A DNA stretch of 63,654 bases, filler included, from Pelomyxa schiedti (Eukaryota > Protista > Evosea), in the NCBI GenBank assembly GCA_020536535.1. It is 15 parts of 15 records of this genome, joined end to end, with 100 filler letters (N's around TTAATTAATTAA, not from the genome) between each part and the next. Parts side by side here need not be neighbours in the genome. Positions count along the whole stretch, not along the records: positions 44,477 to 47,799 come from JAHLWZ010001768.1; 14 more parts are not named here. One strand, written 5' to 3'. The notes below the pieces were generated by a model, which ran no database searches, was not told the DNA's origin, and saw only the letters and a list, made by a program, of their open reading frames with translations. This document shows positions 11,003 to 47,899 of this stretch, piece by piece (position 1 is the first letter of the stretch; the number at the start of each line of letters is the position of its first letter). The position numbers and the translations under genes are program-made.

Positions 11003-13419
11003 ATGGGCACTGAGCAGTCGACTCTGGAGAACGACAAGGCGGAGAACAATGGCGCAGTGGAAACGCGGGACGATGACGTGGATGGTCTCTATGCACCAAA
11101 TAAGCCGGCAATAGCTGCGGCTGCCCCTCCAATACCTGCTAGACAGGGAGTCTGGAGAACGAGAAGCCATATCCTCCAAGTGCATGATGGTAAGATGGTA
11201 ACATCGGTGGACCCTGAAATGTTGACAAGAGAACAGGTACATACTTGAGTGACAGTGTTGTGAAAAGTGTGAGTGAGGTTTATGAAGATTTCTCTTATGT
11301 GACAAGTTTGGGAGGGGGAGTCACTCTGTCAGCTAGGTGGGCAAAAAGCCTTATGTGATCTCTTTCATTGGCGAGACCCAAGAAGGGAAGTCTTTTTTAC
11401 TTGGGAAAATCTTGGAGTGTTTTCGATGGAGTAAATCAGGATTGCCAAGGTGAGATAATCTCNNNNNNNNNNNNNNNNNNNNNNNNNNNNNNNNNNNNNN
11501 NNNNNNNNNNNNNNNNNNNNNNNNNNNNNNNNNNNNNNNNNNNNNNNNNNNNNNNNNNNNNNCAAAAAGCCTTATGTGATCTCTTTCATTGGCGAGACCC
11601 AAGAAGGGAAGTCTTTTTTACTTGGGAAAATCTTGGAGTGTTTTCGATGGAGTAAATCAGGATTGCCAAGGTGAGATAATCTCGCGCACATATGATCAGC
11701 TGAAGAAACACCAAACAGGCCAGCTGTTGGAAACGAAACCGACCCTGAGACCAAGGGTATAGACTTTTACAGCTGTGATGATATGTTTTTTTTAGATTAC
11801 GAAGGCACAAGTGGGGAAACTCCTAGAGAAGAGGTTCGGCCCCACTTTCTCAAATCGAATGATAAGTCATCTAGTGCATTGTAGGGAAAATTTTTCCCAG
11901 ACTCGCTTATGCTGTTAGTTCCACTCTCGTTTTCGTCACAAAAAAGAGTCCAGCAAACAAAACGACATTTCCATCACTTATTGCGTTGCTCAAAGGTGCT
12001 GCCGACTTGGAGTCAAAGGTACCAGCTTGGTGAATTGGTTTTTGCTAGTGCTTACAATTCTACAGGAGGCCTACGAAAAACCTCATCTTATTATTGTGTT
12101 CAACAGGTGTGATGCAAAAGGACTCACAATTGACACGCTGAGCAGTCGTAATCCAGTCGGGTTCCCGTCACTCCTTGAGTTATTCTCTTCCATTACACCT
12201 TATTGTGTACCTGATAAAAATTACACTGCGTTTCCAGTGAAGATTCGTGGTCTTAAGGTAACTTCTCCAAATCAATGCAATTCTACTCCTTTTCAATTAA
12301 TAGGAACTTTTGCGGGGGAAGGGTGTACAACTACCAGCCAGGCAGTGGATATATCTATTTGAAAGTGTTGTATCGCATGTAAGTAAGATGTTCAAGTTTC
12401 CCTGTAACAAAAAACAACAAAGTTCAATAGACCTGAACTGACGCCTGTTCCATTATGTAAATTATATTGTGCCCTGCTTGACAAATTACCTCGACCTTTG
12501 GACAGACTGCAACAATTATTCTTAACCAACATACCAAACCGCATGTGCACTGAAGACAGTTACACACAACACTGCACTCAGGTTTTACGAGCAGTTGCCT
12601 TTGTTTTGGCTGCTCACTATTTTGGCGATCCTACCCCATCTGTCAATGTTTTTCCCCCATCAACATTGTTAACGAGACTTAACTCATAGTAGGATGACAA
12701 CACCGCAGGGAGAGTGGCACTCTTGCTTGAGTACCTTGCAAAGTTTGCCCCATGTACTATATGTGGCGTACAACACTGCTTCCATTCAAGCAGTATTGCA
12801 CACGAGGGACACTTTAACGGACACCCTCTGGATCATGGCAAAATTCAGGAAACCACGCTGCAAACAAAAAGATTCCTGGAGGCTCTGACAAATGCAGTTA
12901 GCTTTTACCCATCTTCTTGTAACCATCTAATGCAGTACAACAGTCTATTACGATAAAATACAACCCTGAATTACGTTGCTTTAATGAAGCCGCCCAAGCA
13001 CATGCATATGATTCTCTTGTCTCTGAATTCAACACAATTCACAAGTTCAGCCGGGATTGCGGTACTGCCCTTGTAACAGGAGCCTCTGTGGGAGCCCTGA
13101 TAGCATTCCCCCCGGCAATCCTTGTGTCTTCATCTGTGGTAGGTGCTCCCTTTGGACTCCTCATTATATGTATCCACAGCACCATTACTTCTTCGATTAA
13201 TCGCAAACAAACGCAGGTGCCGGAGCAGCAGTTGGAGGAACACTGGGGATTCTTGTTGGGCCGGTAAATAGCACAGATGTCACCACACAGGAACGAGTTA
13301 GAGAACTGATGGAGGCAGCAGCACTGCAGGCCTATGCAAAAGGACACATTCACGCCGTAGTCGTTGTGAAAAACTGGAGAAAGGTCAAGATTGCCGAACC
13401 TCCTAAGGGAGAATCGTGA
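11003..13419 (+). CDS. GBP/atlastin-like P-loop NTPase with glycine zipper, copy 2 (tandem paralogue, spliced)
   Basis: MGTEQS..., VISFIGETQEGKS, ETKGID, FLDYEG, PRLAYAVSSTLVFV, KPHLIIVFN, FAPCTICGVQHCFH and GASVGALI..GAGAAVGGTLG. Intron positions match copy 1. Confidence 0.8.
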
Positions 13420-44476: not shown

Positions 44477-45138
44477 GTTTCTCCATTCTGCTGTGCAACG
44501 CTTGGTGTAAATTGTTTGTGAAGACAGACAGCCTCTTTTCTTTGGATCCTTTTATTTGTGAATTATTCCCAATTATTTTATTTCTATGGATCCTATTGTA
44601 TCACCTGATCGTGGAGAGAACCCGTAGCCCTCCCTGTCATATGAGCACGAAGCAATGCCCTCTCTTTGCAGTGATTCCTGCACCAGGACAAACACATTGT
44701 GTCCCTGCATCAAGCCACCCTCCAAAATTACAAGGGGACCTCCCTCAGGGCCCACGCATTTCACGTGCAGTGCTTCACCAAAGTGTCCAGTACCTATCAC
44801 TTGGCCAGAGGGTTTCAGTTTGGAATCCACAAAGTGCCTCATAGCCAAATTAAACAGAGTAACAACCAGAAGAACCACTACCACACCCTATAAGCGTACG
44901 TCAGTAGGTTAAGGTTGTCAACTACTATGTAGCTAATAATGACATTTATTATAATCCCACTAATGGAATACTATACCTCCAAAGTGTAGTCCAGCGCGAC
45001 CCATAATCTCGACGTCGGCTCGTGGAGCTTTTTCTTGGGTTTTGACTTAGGAATCGTACTGCTAGAATTCGACGATGGCGACTTCGATGCAGGGGACTTG
45101 GCCTTTGTTGTGTTTGTGCGTCCTCTGCTCTTTTCCAT
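44477..45138 (-). CDS. Membrane-anchored alpha/beta hydrolase (5' part, spliced)
   Basis: N-terminal TM segments, then LHVKCVG..GPLVILEGG..CSYDREGYGFS, the typical abhydrolase_1 N-terminus. Confidence 0.78.
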
Positions 45139-45363
45139 TTTTTTGTTTTGAAAATCAATCAACATAATCAATAGACCCTAACTAGCGGGTGATGAGTTTG
45201 TTCTGGCTGGAAAGTCCCGGTTACACACAGCAGTGTAGTACAACAATAGGGAAGTAAGTAACCACAGTACTCTGCCTCAGGCTACAGCCCCAGTTTGTCG
45301 CAACAACGATCAGAAAACGGGTGCATGAACAAACACAACAATAAGGACACAACGACGGAGACT

Positions 45364-47163
45364 CTAGAAATCATTAAATTGCGGGGTCGTGGGCGTCGTC
45401 GTGGGCGGGGCGGGTAGCTGCCAGACAGGGCCGCAGTGGTCCCTCCAGTTCGGCTCCGCTAGTAGCCTGAGGGCCCAGTGATAGTGCAACATCTGCCGGC
45501 ACAGCTTCTCCCTGGCGTCAGAATGGTCGGCGAACTTGGTCCTGCCAGATGAGAACACGATGCCGTGTGCCGGGGGCTCGTCGCCGTTGGCGGCTTCCCC
45601 CTGCTGCTGCAGCATGCTATAGTATGGAGCGAGGGTCATGGCATCGTCCAGAGCATGTTCAAGAAAGTAGTGGAGTGCCGGTGGCAGGGTGAGCCTAAAG
45701 CGCGCGAATATGGTGAGCAGATTCATCCTCTCGGCTGAGTGCTCCAGCTGGACTTCTGTTGTGATCTCGTTGTATCGGTGGAATCGGTACGTGAACTTGG
45801 CGAAATCTAAGAGATATGCCACAATCTCCGAGAACGGCAGCTGCGTCACTGCGCCTCCACTGAGCTGTATGTTCTCAACTACGAAAGCGCTCAGGGGCTC
45901 GAACTGTTGCTCTCTCAGGGATTTCTGTATCTCACTGCACCCATCACACTCGAAATCTGGAACGTTGCAAATCAGGAGACTCTGCATTCCCGGCTTGTTT
46001 TCGCCACCCTTGGCATATCTGTTCACGATTTTCTTGAACCTTGAGGCCCAGTTCACTGCGGATTCTCTCAATTTCACGGCCGCTGCTGGTGCTTCTTTTG
46101 CAATGATGCCCACGATCTTCAGAATTGCAGATGTGATCTTATCAAAACAACAATGGTAGGGATCATGGATGAACATCTCCGGCTGCAGGGAATCCCAAGC
46201 CCTGATGCGCTTCCTGAACGGCCGGGATGTTGGCCATAACTTGAATGGGTCATTGAGCCACCTCCCCTTCCTGTCCTGACCACTGAAGCTGCACTTTACG
46301 CAAATTTGGTCGTCCTTTGAGCTGCTCGGTATTATTTCCTTCAAGTTACACATGGCCCTCAGTGTGTACCAGTCGGCAGACAAGAATACTCTCACCGGCA
46401 GAGGCTCACCCCTCTCCGTCACGAGTCCTTTATATTGCTCTGCCCACTTGATTGCAGTTTCCAGTTCACACTCCGTGGCCAGGAATCTCATGGCACCCAG
46501 GCTTGGATCATGTGTCAAGCCCAGAATCCCAATTGGGTGGAACCTGAAGCAGGAATTGCTTATTCCAGGCCCCCTTGCTGCCACACTAATTGCCCAATTA
46601 CACTTGTTGCCAAGAACATCCCGGCCATCTGCAAATAGAACCAGCGGCAGGAACTTCAAGGAGTAGTCGAATCCAAAGCTCACCTCCCTGAGCAAAATGT
46701 ATTCAAACACGAGTTTCGCGTTGACACAAGCTCCAACATCACCAGGGTTTCCCCAGGTCCCCGGCCCTGCAAATGAGTGTAGCCCATACAAGTCCTTGCA
46801 TGCCTCCAGGATAAGCTCGAACCCCTCGGCACCGCAATCTTTGAGTGAGTCACACAGCTTGTCAAGGGGGAGCTTCTGCTTTAGCTTCCATATCGTGGTT
46901 GCCCTGTACTCGCTCTGCATCTCTGCCAAACCCTTCTCCCTGCGTTCACCACTCCGCTTCCTCCCGCGCTTCTGCCTCGGGGGCAAAGCCACGTTTTGCC
47001 AGTCCGTAGCATCTCCTTCTCCATCCTCATCTTCATACACACGCTGTGCTGTGCTGCCGCTGCTCGGCGGGCGTTTTCTTGTTGCTGTACTCATTGCGGA
47101 TGCAGTGACCACACTCTCTGCACTGCCGCGTTTGCTGCCACCACTGCTGCTGTTCGCCCTCAT
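45364..47163 (-). CDS. RAG1/Transib-like DDE transposase/recombinase core, intact 599 aa
   Basis: Ordered motifs LFAD179G, SNSCFRFHPIGI, LSAD264W, IC288VKC291, HD334PYH337C, LH498YFLEH503, QQGE523AAN and AREKLCRQMLHYHW. These match the RAG1 landmarks D600, PNSELCCKPL, D708, C727/C730, DALH795C, H937/H942, E962 and ARQSK..VLKHHW. Comparison is by eye. Confidence 0.75.
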   Translation of the reverse strand: MRANSSSGGSKRGSAESVVTASAMSTATRKRPPSSGSTAQRVYEDEDGEGDATDWQNVALPPRQKRGRKRSGERREKGLAEMQSEYRATTIWKLKQKLPLDKLCDSLKDCGAEGFELILEACKDLYGLHSFAGPGTWGNPGDVGACVNAKLVFEYILLREVSFGFDYSLKFLPLVLFADGRDVLGNKCNWAISVAARGPGISNSCFRFHPIGILGLTHDPSLGAMRFLATECELETAIKWAEQYKGLVTERGEPLPVRVFLSADWYTLRAMCNLKEIIPSSSKDDQICVKCSFSGQDRKGRWLNDPFKLWPTSRPFRKRIRAWDSLQPEMFIHDPYHCCFDKITSAILKIVGIIAKEAPAAAVKLRESAVNWASRFKKIVNRYAKGGENKPGMQSLLICNVPDFECDGCSEIQKSLREQQFEPLSAFVVENIQLSGGAVTQLPFSEIVAYLLDFAKFTYRFHRYNEITTEVQLEHSAERMNLLTIFARFRLTLPPALHYFLEHALDDAMTLAPYYSMLQQQGEAANGDEPPAHGIVFSSGRTKFADHSDAREKLCRQMLHYHWALRLLAEPNWRDHCGPVWQLPAPPTTTPTTPQFNDF

Positions 47164-47899
47164 TCACCTCGGCCCCAAACCCAAGAAAAGAACGTAGAAG
47201 GATGAAAGAAAAATCAATCTTACGATCTTGGGAAAAAAAGGGGTTTATAAGGAATGGACGCAGGGGAATGGCTGACGTAATGACAGGTGACAAACGGGCT
47301 TAGATTTTCTATCCAAACATTTTGCACACCAAGAAACTCTATGAGATCTGTGACCGCGACCGTGATGAGTGATTGATCACTTGGCTGGCGTCGCTCTGTC
47401 AGCAGTGTTTGTGATGAGAAAACCAACAAGAAGGGCAGTGTCACGGAGCGCAGGGGGAGGAGGGAAGACGGGGGGACGCCGCGTGATGCCTGCCCGAGAG
47501 GAGGGCCAGATGGCCAGCGGGCGAGGGAGGAGAGAGGGGGCCATCACCACCAATGGCGCCAGGGAGGGACCGACACGCGGAGCGGACGGAGGAGCGGGGA
47601 CGGCTGGCTGGGTTCCACGGGGTAAGGGCACCACAACCTCGGGGGCGGGTTGGCGGACGCCGCTGCCTCGGCACCGCGGGAGAGAACGTGGCAATAGGTG
47701 CCGCCGCCGCAAGTACGGGGAAGGTCGACTGCGCCGCATGGGCTGGACAGAGGGACGGCCGCGGGGCGTCCTGCGGTGCAGAGGCATTCGGGGCTCGGAN
47801 NNNNNNNNNNNNNNNNNNNNNNNNNNNNNNNNNNNNNNNNNNNTTAATTAATTAANNNNNNNNNNNNNNNNNNNNNNNNNNNNNNNNNNNNNNNNNNNN

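Follow-up and report, generated by a model that had tools for sequence, protein, structure and literature searches.

A predicted RAG1-fold transposase gene, probably immobilised, in Pelomyxa schiedti, and mobile relatives that appear to insert without target site duplication

The core of RAG1 has its catalytic residues at D600, D708 and E962 and a zinc site formed by C727, C730, H937 and H942. RAG and the Transib transposases nick one strand and then open the second strand through a hairpin, and they join DNA ends to a sharply bent target at points 5 bp apart. CACTA elements have a two-gene layout. All of these belong to the CACTA-Mirage-Chapaev-Transib (CMCT) clade, which also holds RAG1. EnSpm/CACTA, Mirage, Chapaev, Transib, Plavaka, ESTA, Lanisha and RAG1 all carry C(2)C and H(3-4)H motifs, and the groups of the clade have 5'-CA..TG-3' termini and make target site duplications (TSDs) of 2-5 bp (PMC12730594). 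Transib is defined by a 5-bp TSD, and the spacing between the second catalytic Asp and the Glu (D2-E) is 206-214 aa in Transib and 253 aa in RAG1 (PMC1131882). Insertion without a TSD is known from Spy elements, which belong to another group (PHIS; PMC4122938). RAGL and Transib have already been published from outside the animals, in a pelagophyte alga, fungi, plants and bacteria (PMC9435367), so the occurrence outside the animals, to which a preliminary description of the locus studied here drew attention, is not in itself a surprise. Our literature search found no report of such a gene for Pelomyxa or Amoebozoa.

The window that we analysed is a stretch of 63,654 nt of P. schiedti DNA (assembly GCA_020536535.1), and positions given without a contig name count along it (Table 1). 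The P. schiedti genome, obtained from seven amplified cells, has 7.4 introns per gene (PMC8887013). For the piece at 44477-47799 the preliminary description had claimed an uninterrupted, intronless ORF of 599 aa, and a frame scan of the piece bore this out: there are 599 open codons and no introns at 45364-47163 on the minus strand, and the chance of an open frame as long as this, calculated from base composition, is about 3e-12. We found no tandem repeats around the ORF and no entry for the intact protein in the public protein collection. Residues 1-75 are mostly missing from the environmental relatives described below, and M25, which by eye matches the N-terminus of the paralog Pelo_15944, may be the true start. 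We consider it probable that this is an intact, immobilised transposase gene of an apparently undescribed CMCT lineage, fixed in the P. schiedti genome just upstream of a hydrolase gene.

Table 1. Features of the RAG1-fold ORF, its surroundings and its relatives. L numbers denote contigs or scaffolds outside the window.
Feature	Position	Strand	Basis or remark
RAG1-fold DDE transposase ORF (predicted), CMCT clade, 599 aa, intronless	45364..47163	(-)	frame, residues, model
Folded core, residues ~77-583	45415..46935	(-)	aligned to RAG1 ~459-1008, HzTransib 21-487
N-terminus, residues 1-75, low-complexity basic/acidic, predicted disordered	46939..47163	(-)	alignment, model
D179, putative first catalytic Asp	46627..46629	(-)	kept in every relative covering the site
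D264, putative second catalytic Asp, in invariant DW motif	46372..46374	(-)	alignment of relatives
C288-x2-C291, putative zinc pair	46291..46302	(-)	alignment of relatives
H337, conserved His	46153..46155	(-)	alignment of relatives
H498-x4-H503, putative zinc pair	45655..45672	(-)	invariant in relatives
E523, putative catalytic Glu	45595..45597	(-)	alignment of relatives
RNA-run contigs identical to intact allele	46054..46590		single-cell run X4, depth 2.7-4.8
Alpha/beta hydrolase host gene, 5' part	44477..45138	(-)	shared with other haplotype
Dispersed repeat 3' of ORF	45196..45296		depth up to 430 over first ~60 bp
Upstream segment only on intact allele	47190..47430	(-)	decayed allele has unrelated sequence there
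Short dispersed repeat	47270..47330		depth 224-411 vs ~10 around; within allele-specific upstream segment
GC-rich upstream flank	47432..47793		~95% identity with other haplotype
Paralog Pelo_15944, 27% identity	L001:3458-5127		introns, intact motifs
Recently mobile 3.7-kb P0004 element	L003:2019-5761; L004:3295-7030		bipartite ends
Empty site of P0004 element	L026 near 4860; L028 near 161		flanks joined at T^A
Complete element, TIR start CACCGTG	L006:1-3846		one base from RSS heptamer CACAGTG
Second gene, 264-344 aa, divergent	L008, L010, L012, L013, L016, L017, L018		G-x-x-V...W-x-V domain

No sequence match to Pfam families or PDB chains was found with single sequences or with three profiles, and no homologues turned up among viral structures, viral contigs or prokaryotic genomes. 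A word-index search returned nothing for the 599-aa protein alone and one match with a profile, and an exhaustive phmmer search with the protein returned 11 matches. The structure model of the single sequence was uninformative (pLDDT 37); the model built from an 11-sequence alignment had a mean pLDDT of 63 and a pTM of 0.64, with low confidence over residues 1-101. With the latter, all 49 of the 49 Foldseek matches below an E-value of 0.001 were RAG1, BbRAGL or HzTransib (E 7e-5 for HzTransib 6PQX, which is a hairpin-forming complex). Structural Z-scores were 16.9 for RAG1, 16.1 for HzTransib, 14.7 for BbRAGL, 11.0 for the P element and 6.9 for Hermes, and the superpositions on RAG1 and HzTransib aligned 411-435 residues with an rmsd of 5.3-5.6. 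At 16.9 against 16.1, RAG1 and Transib are tied as fold matches. Foldseek and the Z-scores agree on a predicted fold of the RAG1/Transib type, as had been proposed, and the residues of the DDE and zinc motifs are present; on this model we regard the fold and the catalytic assignment as well supported. The RAG1 core regions (DDBD, pre-RNase H, RNase H, zinc-binding, CTD) are matched over ~430 residues.

Each of the residues proposed for the active site and the zinc site is where it was said to be (D179, D264, C288, C291, D334, H337, C338, H498, H503 and E523), and so are the spacings of 20 aa between H503 and E523 and of 259 aa between D264 and E523. Among 17 relatives (16-24% identity), the catalytic and zinc candidates vary little or not at all, with conservation of D179, the DW at 264, the CxxC, H337, H498/H503 and E523. 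The DPYHC motif survived in part: H337 is conserved, while D334 and C338 are not conserved among relatives. H337 is likely the counterpart of the RAG1 active-site H795, judging from the order of the motifs. Around the catalytic Glu the relatives read E-G-x-E-x-x-N, which we take to resemble the RAG1 sequence around its own catalytic Glu. Position 3 before this Glu is E in all environmental relatives covering that stretch, Q in the 599-aa protein (before E523) and D in the paralog (P0002).

A basic segment near the N-terminus had been likened to the GRPR or nonamer-binding region of RAG1, and this likeness we had to give up. The structural match to mouse RAG1 begins at model residues 73-82 (RAG1 455-461), and RGRKR, at residue 66, lies only ~10 residues ahead of it, so there is no room for a nonamer-binding domain; the segment is also mostly missing in relatives. 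We likewise found no nonamer-binding domain with a GRP motif before the DDBD and no linked RAG2L kelch propeller gene, both of which mark RAGL and RAG1. The absence of a RAG2-like partner, already remarked on, holds for the piece at 44477-47799 and extends to the scaffolds with the paralog and with the other haplotype (L001 and L002).

The environmental homologues sit in elements of 3.0-3.8 kb with terminal inverted repeats (TIRs) that start CAC or CAG. These starts were seen in seven element copies, with CAC in three elements. Two elements were each found at two loci, and the copies at different loci are 99.8% and 99.97% identical, so those two elements have moved recently. The P0004 element, which is polymorphic within one eukaryotic sample, has bipartite ends (CACATCTGGCTCC, then CGACACAG), and no second gene was detected in it by profile. 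P0004 groups with the 599-aa protein, the paralog and P0007 with 100/100 support, in a midpoint-rooted family tree with long branches, from which three fragments were left out; the 599-aa protein and the paralog are among those long branches.

A second gene, 264-421 aa long and usually in divergent orientation, is present in most environmental elements. Its product has a basic N-terminus, a small conserved beta-type domain and a coiled-coil-like end, with weak AT-hook matches in two members. Searches of the second gene against Pfam and the predicted-structure Atlas gave nothing above the Pfam cut-off, no kelch and no Atlas match, and judged by its sequence it is not RAG2-like. In the L006 element the second gene lies downstream in tandem, not divergent. 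Another element, at L018:127-2547, has inverted ends of 16 bp and contains an ORF that is hAT-like by eye; 2 bp separate its end from the left TIR of the RAG1-fold transposon there.

None of the five elements with both flanks has a 5-bp TSD, and there is no consistent TSD of any length in these five (one 2-bp and one 1-bp match, which is within chance). The left flank ends in T in 5 of 6 cases and the right flank starts with A in 6 of 7. For the P0004 element of L003 there is also an empty site, found on a 562-kb contig of the same sample and on one short-read contig, in which the flanks are joined directly at T^A with nothing duplicated or lost. The right junction of this element was confirmed by another short-read contig. 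A few bases left of the junction, the empty haplotype carries a substitution and a 4-bp indel relative to the filled one; neither bears on the missing duplication in the filled site. For the L004 copy, the candidate contig for an empty site (L031) stops short of the junction. On this evidence, which comes from the elements of the relatives and not from the Pelomyxa locus, we take insertion at T^A without a TSD as shown for the one element that has an empty site, and the four others are consistent with it. A literature search gave no report of TSD-free insertion for the RAG1 fold. Near the insertion site in L004 there is a divergent histone-like ORF (1718-2302) of 194 aa with a long basic C-terminal tail.

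The proposal of a divergent RAG1-family enzyme thus has to be divided. The RAG1-like fold stands. Membership in the RAG1 or Transib family is not supported: C(2)C and H(3-4)H motifs occur throughout the CMCT clade, predicted CACTA structures fit the model no worse than RAG1 does, and the 5-bp TSD is missing from relatives with TIRs. There are points in favour of a true but very divergent Transib or RAG1L that transposes with a 5-bp TSD: the E-G-x-E-x-x-N of the relatives recalls RAG1, three elements have TIRs starting CAC (an RSS-like feature seen in some relatives and not at the Pelomyxa locus), and RAG1 and Transib are the best matches among solved structures. The D2-E spacing of 259 aa is also near the 253 aa of RAG1 (PMC1131882). 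We consider this reading improbable. No structure of a CACTA, Mirage or Chapaev enzyme is among the PDB matches, so those groups cannot be told apart by the PDB ranking, and among clusters of predicted structures the TM-scores by query length were 0.61-0.62 for CACTA Transposase_21 vs 0.51-0.55 for RAG1 (unnamed and DUF1280 clusters gave 0.58-0.63). The 5-bp TSD is missing in 5 of 5 elements, the protein lacks a nonamer-binding domain, and the second gene does not encode a kelch propeller.

To place the family instead on the CACTA/Mirage/Chapaev side (or with ESTA, Plavaka or Lanisha), so that the RAG1 likeness reflects only the shared CMCT fold, seems to us improbable to a similar degree. The matches to Atlas Transposase_21 clusters speak for it, and the second gene is reminiscent of the CACTA layout. 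The relatives also have the 5'-CA..TG-3' ends typical of these groups (PMC12730594), as CAC or CAG in the seven element copies, with the copy in the window having no ends. Against it, these groups make 2-5-bp TSDs (PMC12730594) and none was seen in the relatives; none of 15 family members has a Pfam match, Transposase_21 (PF02992) included; and language-model features put RAG1 clusters at the top, at 0.93 (borderline recognition), and did not rank CACTA. With its element features and its blank searches setting it apart, the family is apparently an undescribed lineage.

The closest phmmer matches were P. schiedti Pelo_4129 and Pelo_4130 (81-83% identity), together with the full-length paralog Pelo_15944 (27%). 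Pelo_4129 and Pelo_4130 are encoded on scaffold JAHLWZ010000321.1 (L002), which matches our piece on both flanks and carries the downstream alpha/beta hydrolase gene as well, and we infer from this that the piece is an alternative haplotype of the JAHLWZ010000321.1 locus. Contamination, raised in the preliminary description as something to check, was rejected on the match of the flanks to P. schiedti and on the spliced host gene next to the ORF (the 56-nt intron of the hydrolase gene at 44548-44603 is spliced in RNA contigs); the contig is from a eukaryotic amoeba host and its nearest matches are P. schiedti.

The ORF has a single-copy-like read depth, and runs X1 and X2 contain both allele versions at similar depth. 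The read variants correspond to the decayed allele on L002, so there is no sign of further copies of the ORF, and a multi-copy active family was rejected because the variants map to this one allele. TIRs around the ORF were sought and nothing rose above shuffles. No TIRs surround the ORF, it occupies one locus and its second allele has decayed, so we found no support for the suggestion of an active transposase. A single fixed locus without TIRs is what would be expected of a domesticated gene.

The dispersed repeat 3' of the ORF has a sharp end at 45196 and tens of copies by contig depth. Copies lie at L001:634-754 and L002:3540-3644, and the repeat adjoins both Pelomyxa RAG1-fold genes. It faces outward from the ORF and is found inverted 2.7 kb upstream of Pelo_15944, and for these reasons one could read it as the 3' end of a Pelomyxa element that is still active and has unusual ends or ends outside the contig. 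We hold this to be very improbable. Both flanks run into host sequence shared with the other haplotype, no matching inverted copy of the repeat lies upstream in the window or in L002, and the depth of the ORF is that of a single copy. The repeat also starts GGGTG, not CAC or CAG, and was therefore not accepted as a TIR.

Some other features around the two Pelomyxa genes deserve mention. The 45196 and 47270 repeats were considered as structured RNAs and rejected, as there was no Rfam match and no folding signal. A frame in the GC-rich upstream flank was rejected as the second gene of the family (no profile match). The upstream segment at 47190-47430 holds a TATAAA-like box at 47244-47249, a TGACGTAA motif and the high-copy 60-bp repeat. 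A degenerate direct similarity flanks the ORF (45189-45262 and 47362-47444; score 37-41 vs ~24 +/- 3 in shuffles); each of its two parts precedes a minus-strand gene, possibly as a promoter-type element. On L001, long inverted repeats (72-86% identity) at 11879-13127 span the junction of two convergent guanylate-cyclase-domain genes.

In the other allele the ORF carries a 1.2-kb insertion along with several large deletions and 11 small ones, and no codons of the catalytic triad can be aligned. The insert (L002:1716-2907, ~1.2 kb, unrelated) contains an internal hairpin at 2413-2468. The alleles diverge by 5.5% in the ORF vs 1.4-2.2% in most flanking blocks. All 11 of the small indels in the ORF are losses in the decayed allele, whereas indels in the flanks are divided 5 vs 7 (Fisher p 0.037); the intact haplotype has five losses in ~1.2 kb of flank and none in the ORF. 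C>T/G>A changes number 24 towards the decayed allele vs 6 in the opposite direction, and 17 of 38 allele differences are CpG transitions. Because the mutation spectrum had to be allowed for, we set aside the raw pN/pS of 0.37 (p 0.002) in favour of a value of ~0.58 (p 0.056). RNA over 46054-46590 comes from one low-depth run that may contain DNA.

That one allele decayed and the other is still open faintly suggests that the intact allele was kept by selection or spared from silencing, and to this extent domestication of the 599-aa gene is possible. It is somewhat unlikely, in our judgement, that the ORF is a neutral fossil, an old insertion of which one allele has so far escaped decay (e.g. 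by being unmethylated) and which has no host function. With the second allele destroyed, no more than one working copy can be required, the corrected selection test misses significance at p 0.056, the CpG share points to allele-specific silencing behind the asymmetry, and RNA is scant; all of this suits a fossil. A fossil is harder to square with an intact haplotype that lost flank sequence five times and ORF sequence never, with a full set of catalytic and zinc residues, and with a second TIR-less, intron-bearing paralog with intact motifs. This paralog, Pelo_15944, is interrupted by two introns, keeps its DDE and zinc motifs intact and lacks TIRs, its neighbours are aconitase and enolase genes, and by its sequence it is a second domestication candidate. 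The locus in the window fits an immobilised gene, kept or spared, for which any host function is putative.

If the enzyme works as its fold implies, a dimer would bind ends starting CAC or CAG. Within an RNase H fold, D179, D264 and E523 would coordinate two metal ions, with H337 assisting, and C288, C291, H498 and H503 would bind one zinc. One strand would be nicked and the second then opened through a hairpin on the flanking DNA. In the mobile relatives the freed ends would join directly opposed bonds at T^A, and without a stagger no target duplication forms. At the Pelomyxa locus the element ends and the second gene are not detectable, and the intact allele stayed open while the other decayed, perhaps through selection or escape from silencing. 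A role in the host as a nuclease, a recombinase or a trans-acting helper for short non-autonomous elements is speculation. The broadest reading, which we find doubtful, is that these are new protist RAG1-fold transposons with blunt T^A insertion and a second gene that has no relation to RAG2, immobilised twice in Pelomyxa (as the 599-aa gene and as Pelo_15944), with at least one copy serving as a host nuclease or recombinase domesticated independently of vertebrates.

A naturally occurring relative that shares this fold and inserts without a duplication would allow a direct test of what sets the 5-bp stagger, and recently mobile copies with known ends are identified (L003/L004 and L018/L019). 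The family adds a deep RAG2-free branch to the question of the origin of RAG1. With an intact and a decayed allele at one site, the Pelomyxa locus gives a rare view between decay and domestication, and host use there, if true, would be a RAG-fold domestication independent of vertebrates.

Compared with known systems, the family is like Spy (PHIS; PMC4122938) in showing cut-and-paste DDE transposition with no TSD and a preference for AT-rich targets; Spy has a PHIS transposase, whereas here there is a RAG1 fold and a zinc site, so the likeness is one of outcome. EnSpm/CACTA, Mirage, Chapaev, Plavaka, ESTA and Lanisha make 2-5-bp TSDs and the present family shows none; it also differs from EnSpm/CACTA in having no Pfam Transposase_21 match. 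With Transib (HzTransib, 6PQX) it shares the fold (Z 16.1, 411 residues), the DDE and C2C/H4H residues and the absence of RAG2, and the relatives of the 599-aa protein are 3-4 kb long with CAC-type ends. It differs in identity (9-10%), in a family D2-E spacing of 224-259 aa vs 206-214, in relatives that have no 5-bp TSD and mostly carry a second gene, and in a Pelomyxa copy without TIRs. From RAG1 and RAGL the Pelomyxa protein differs in having no nonamer-binding domain, no RING/N-terminal region and no RAG2L, its relatives lack the 5-bp TSD, and its D1-D2 spacing is 85 aa vs 108 in RAG1. It resembles the RAG1 core and RAGL (mouse RAG1, BbRAGL, Aureococcus AanRAGL) in its fold from the DDBD to the C-terminal region (Z 14.7-16.9), in motif order and in a near-equal D2-E spacing (259 vs 253 aa). 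On the model, the 599-aa protein is best filed within the CMCT clade, with a RAG1/Transib-like fold and probably the chemistry to match.
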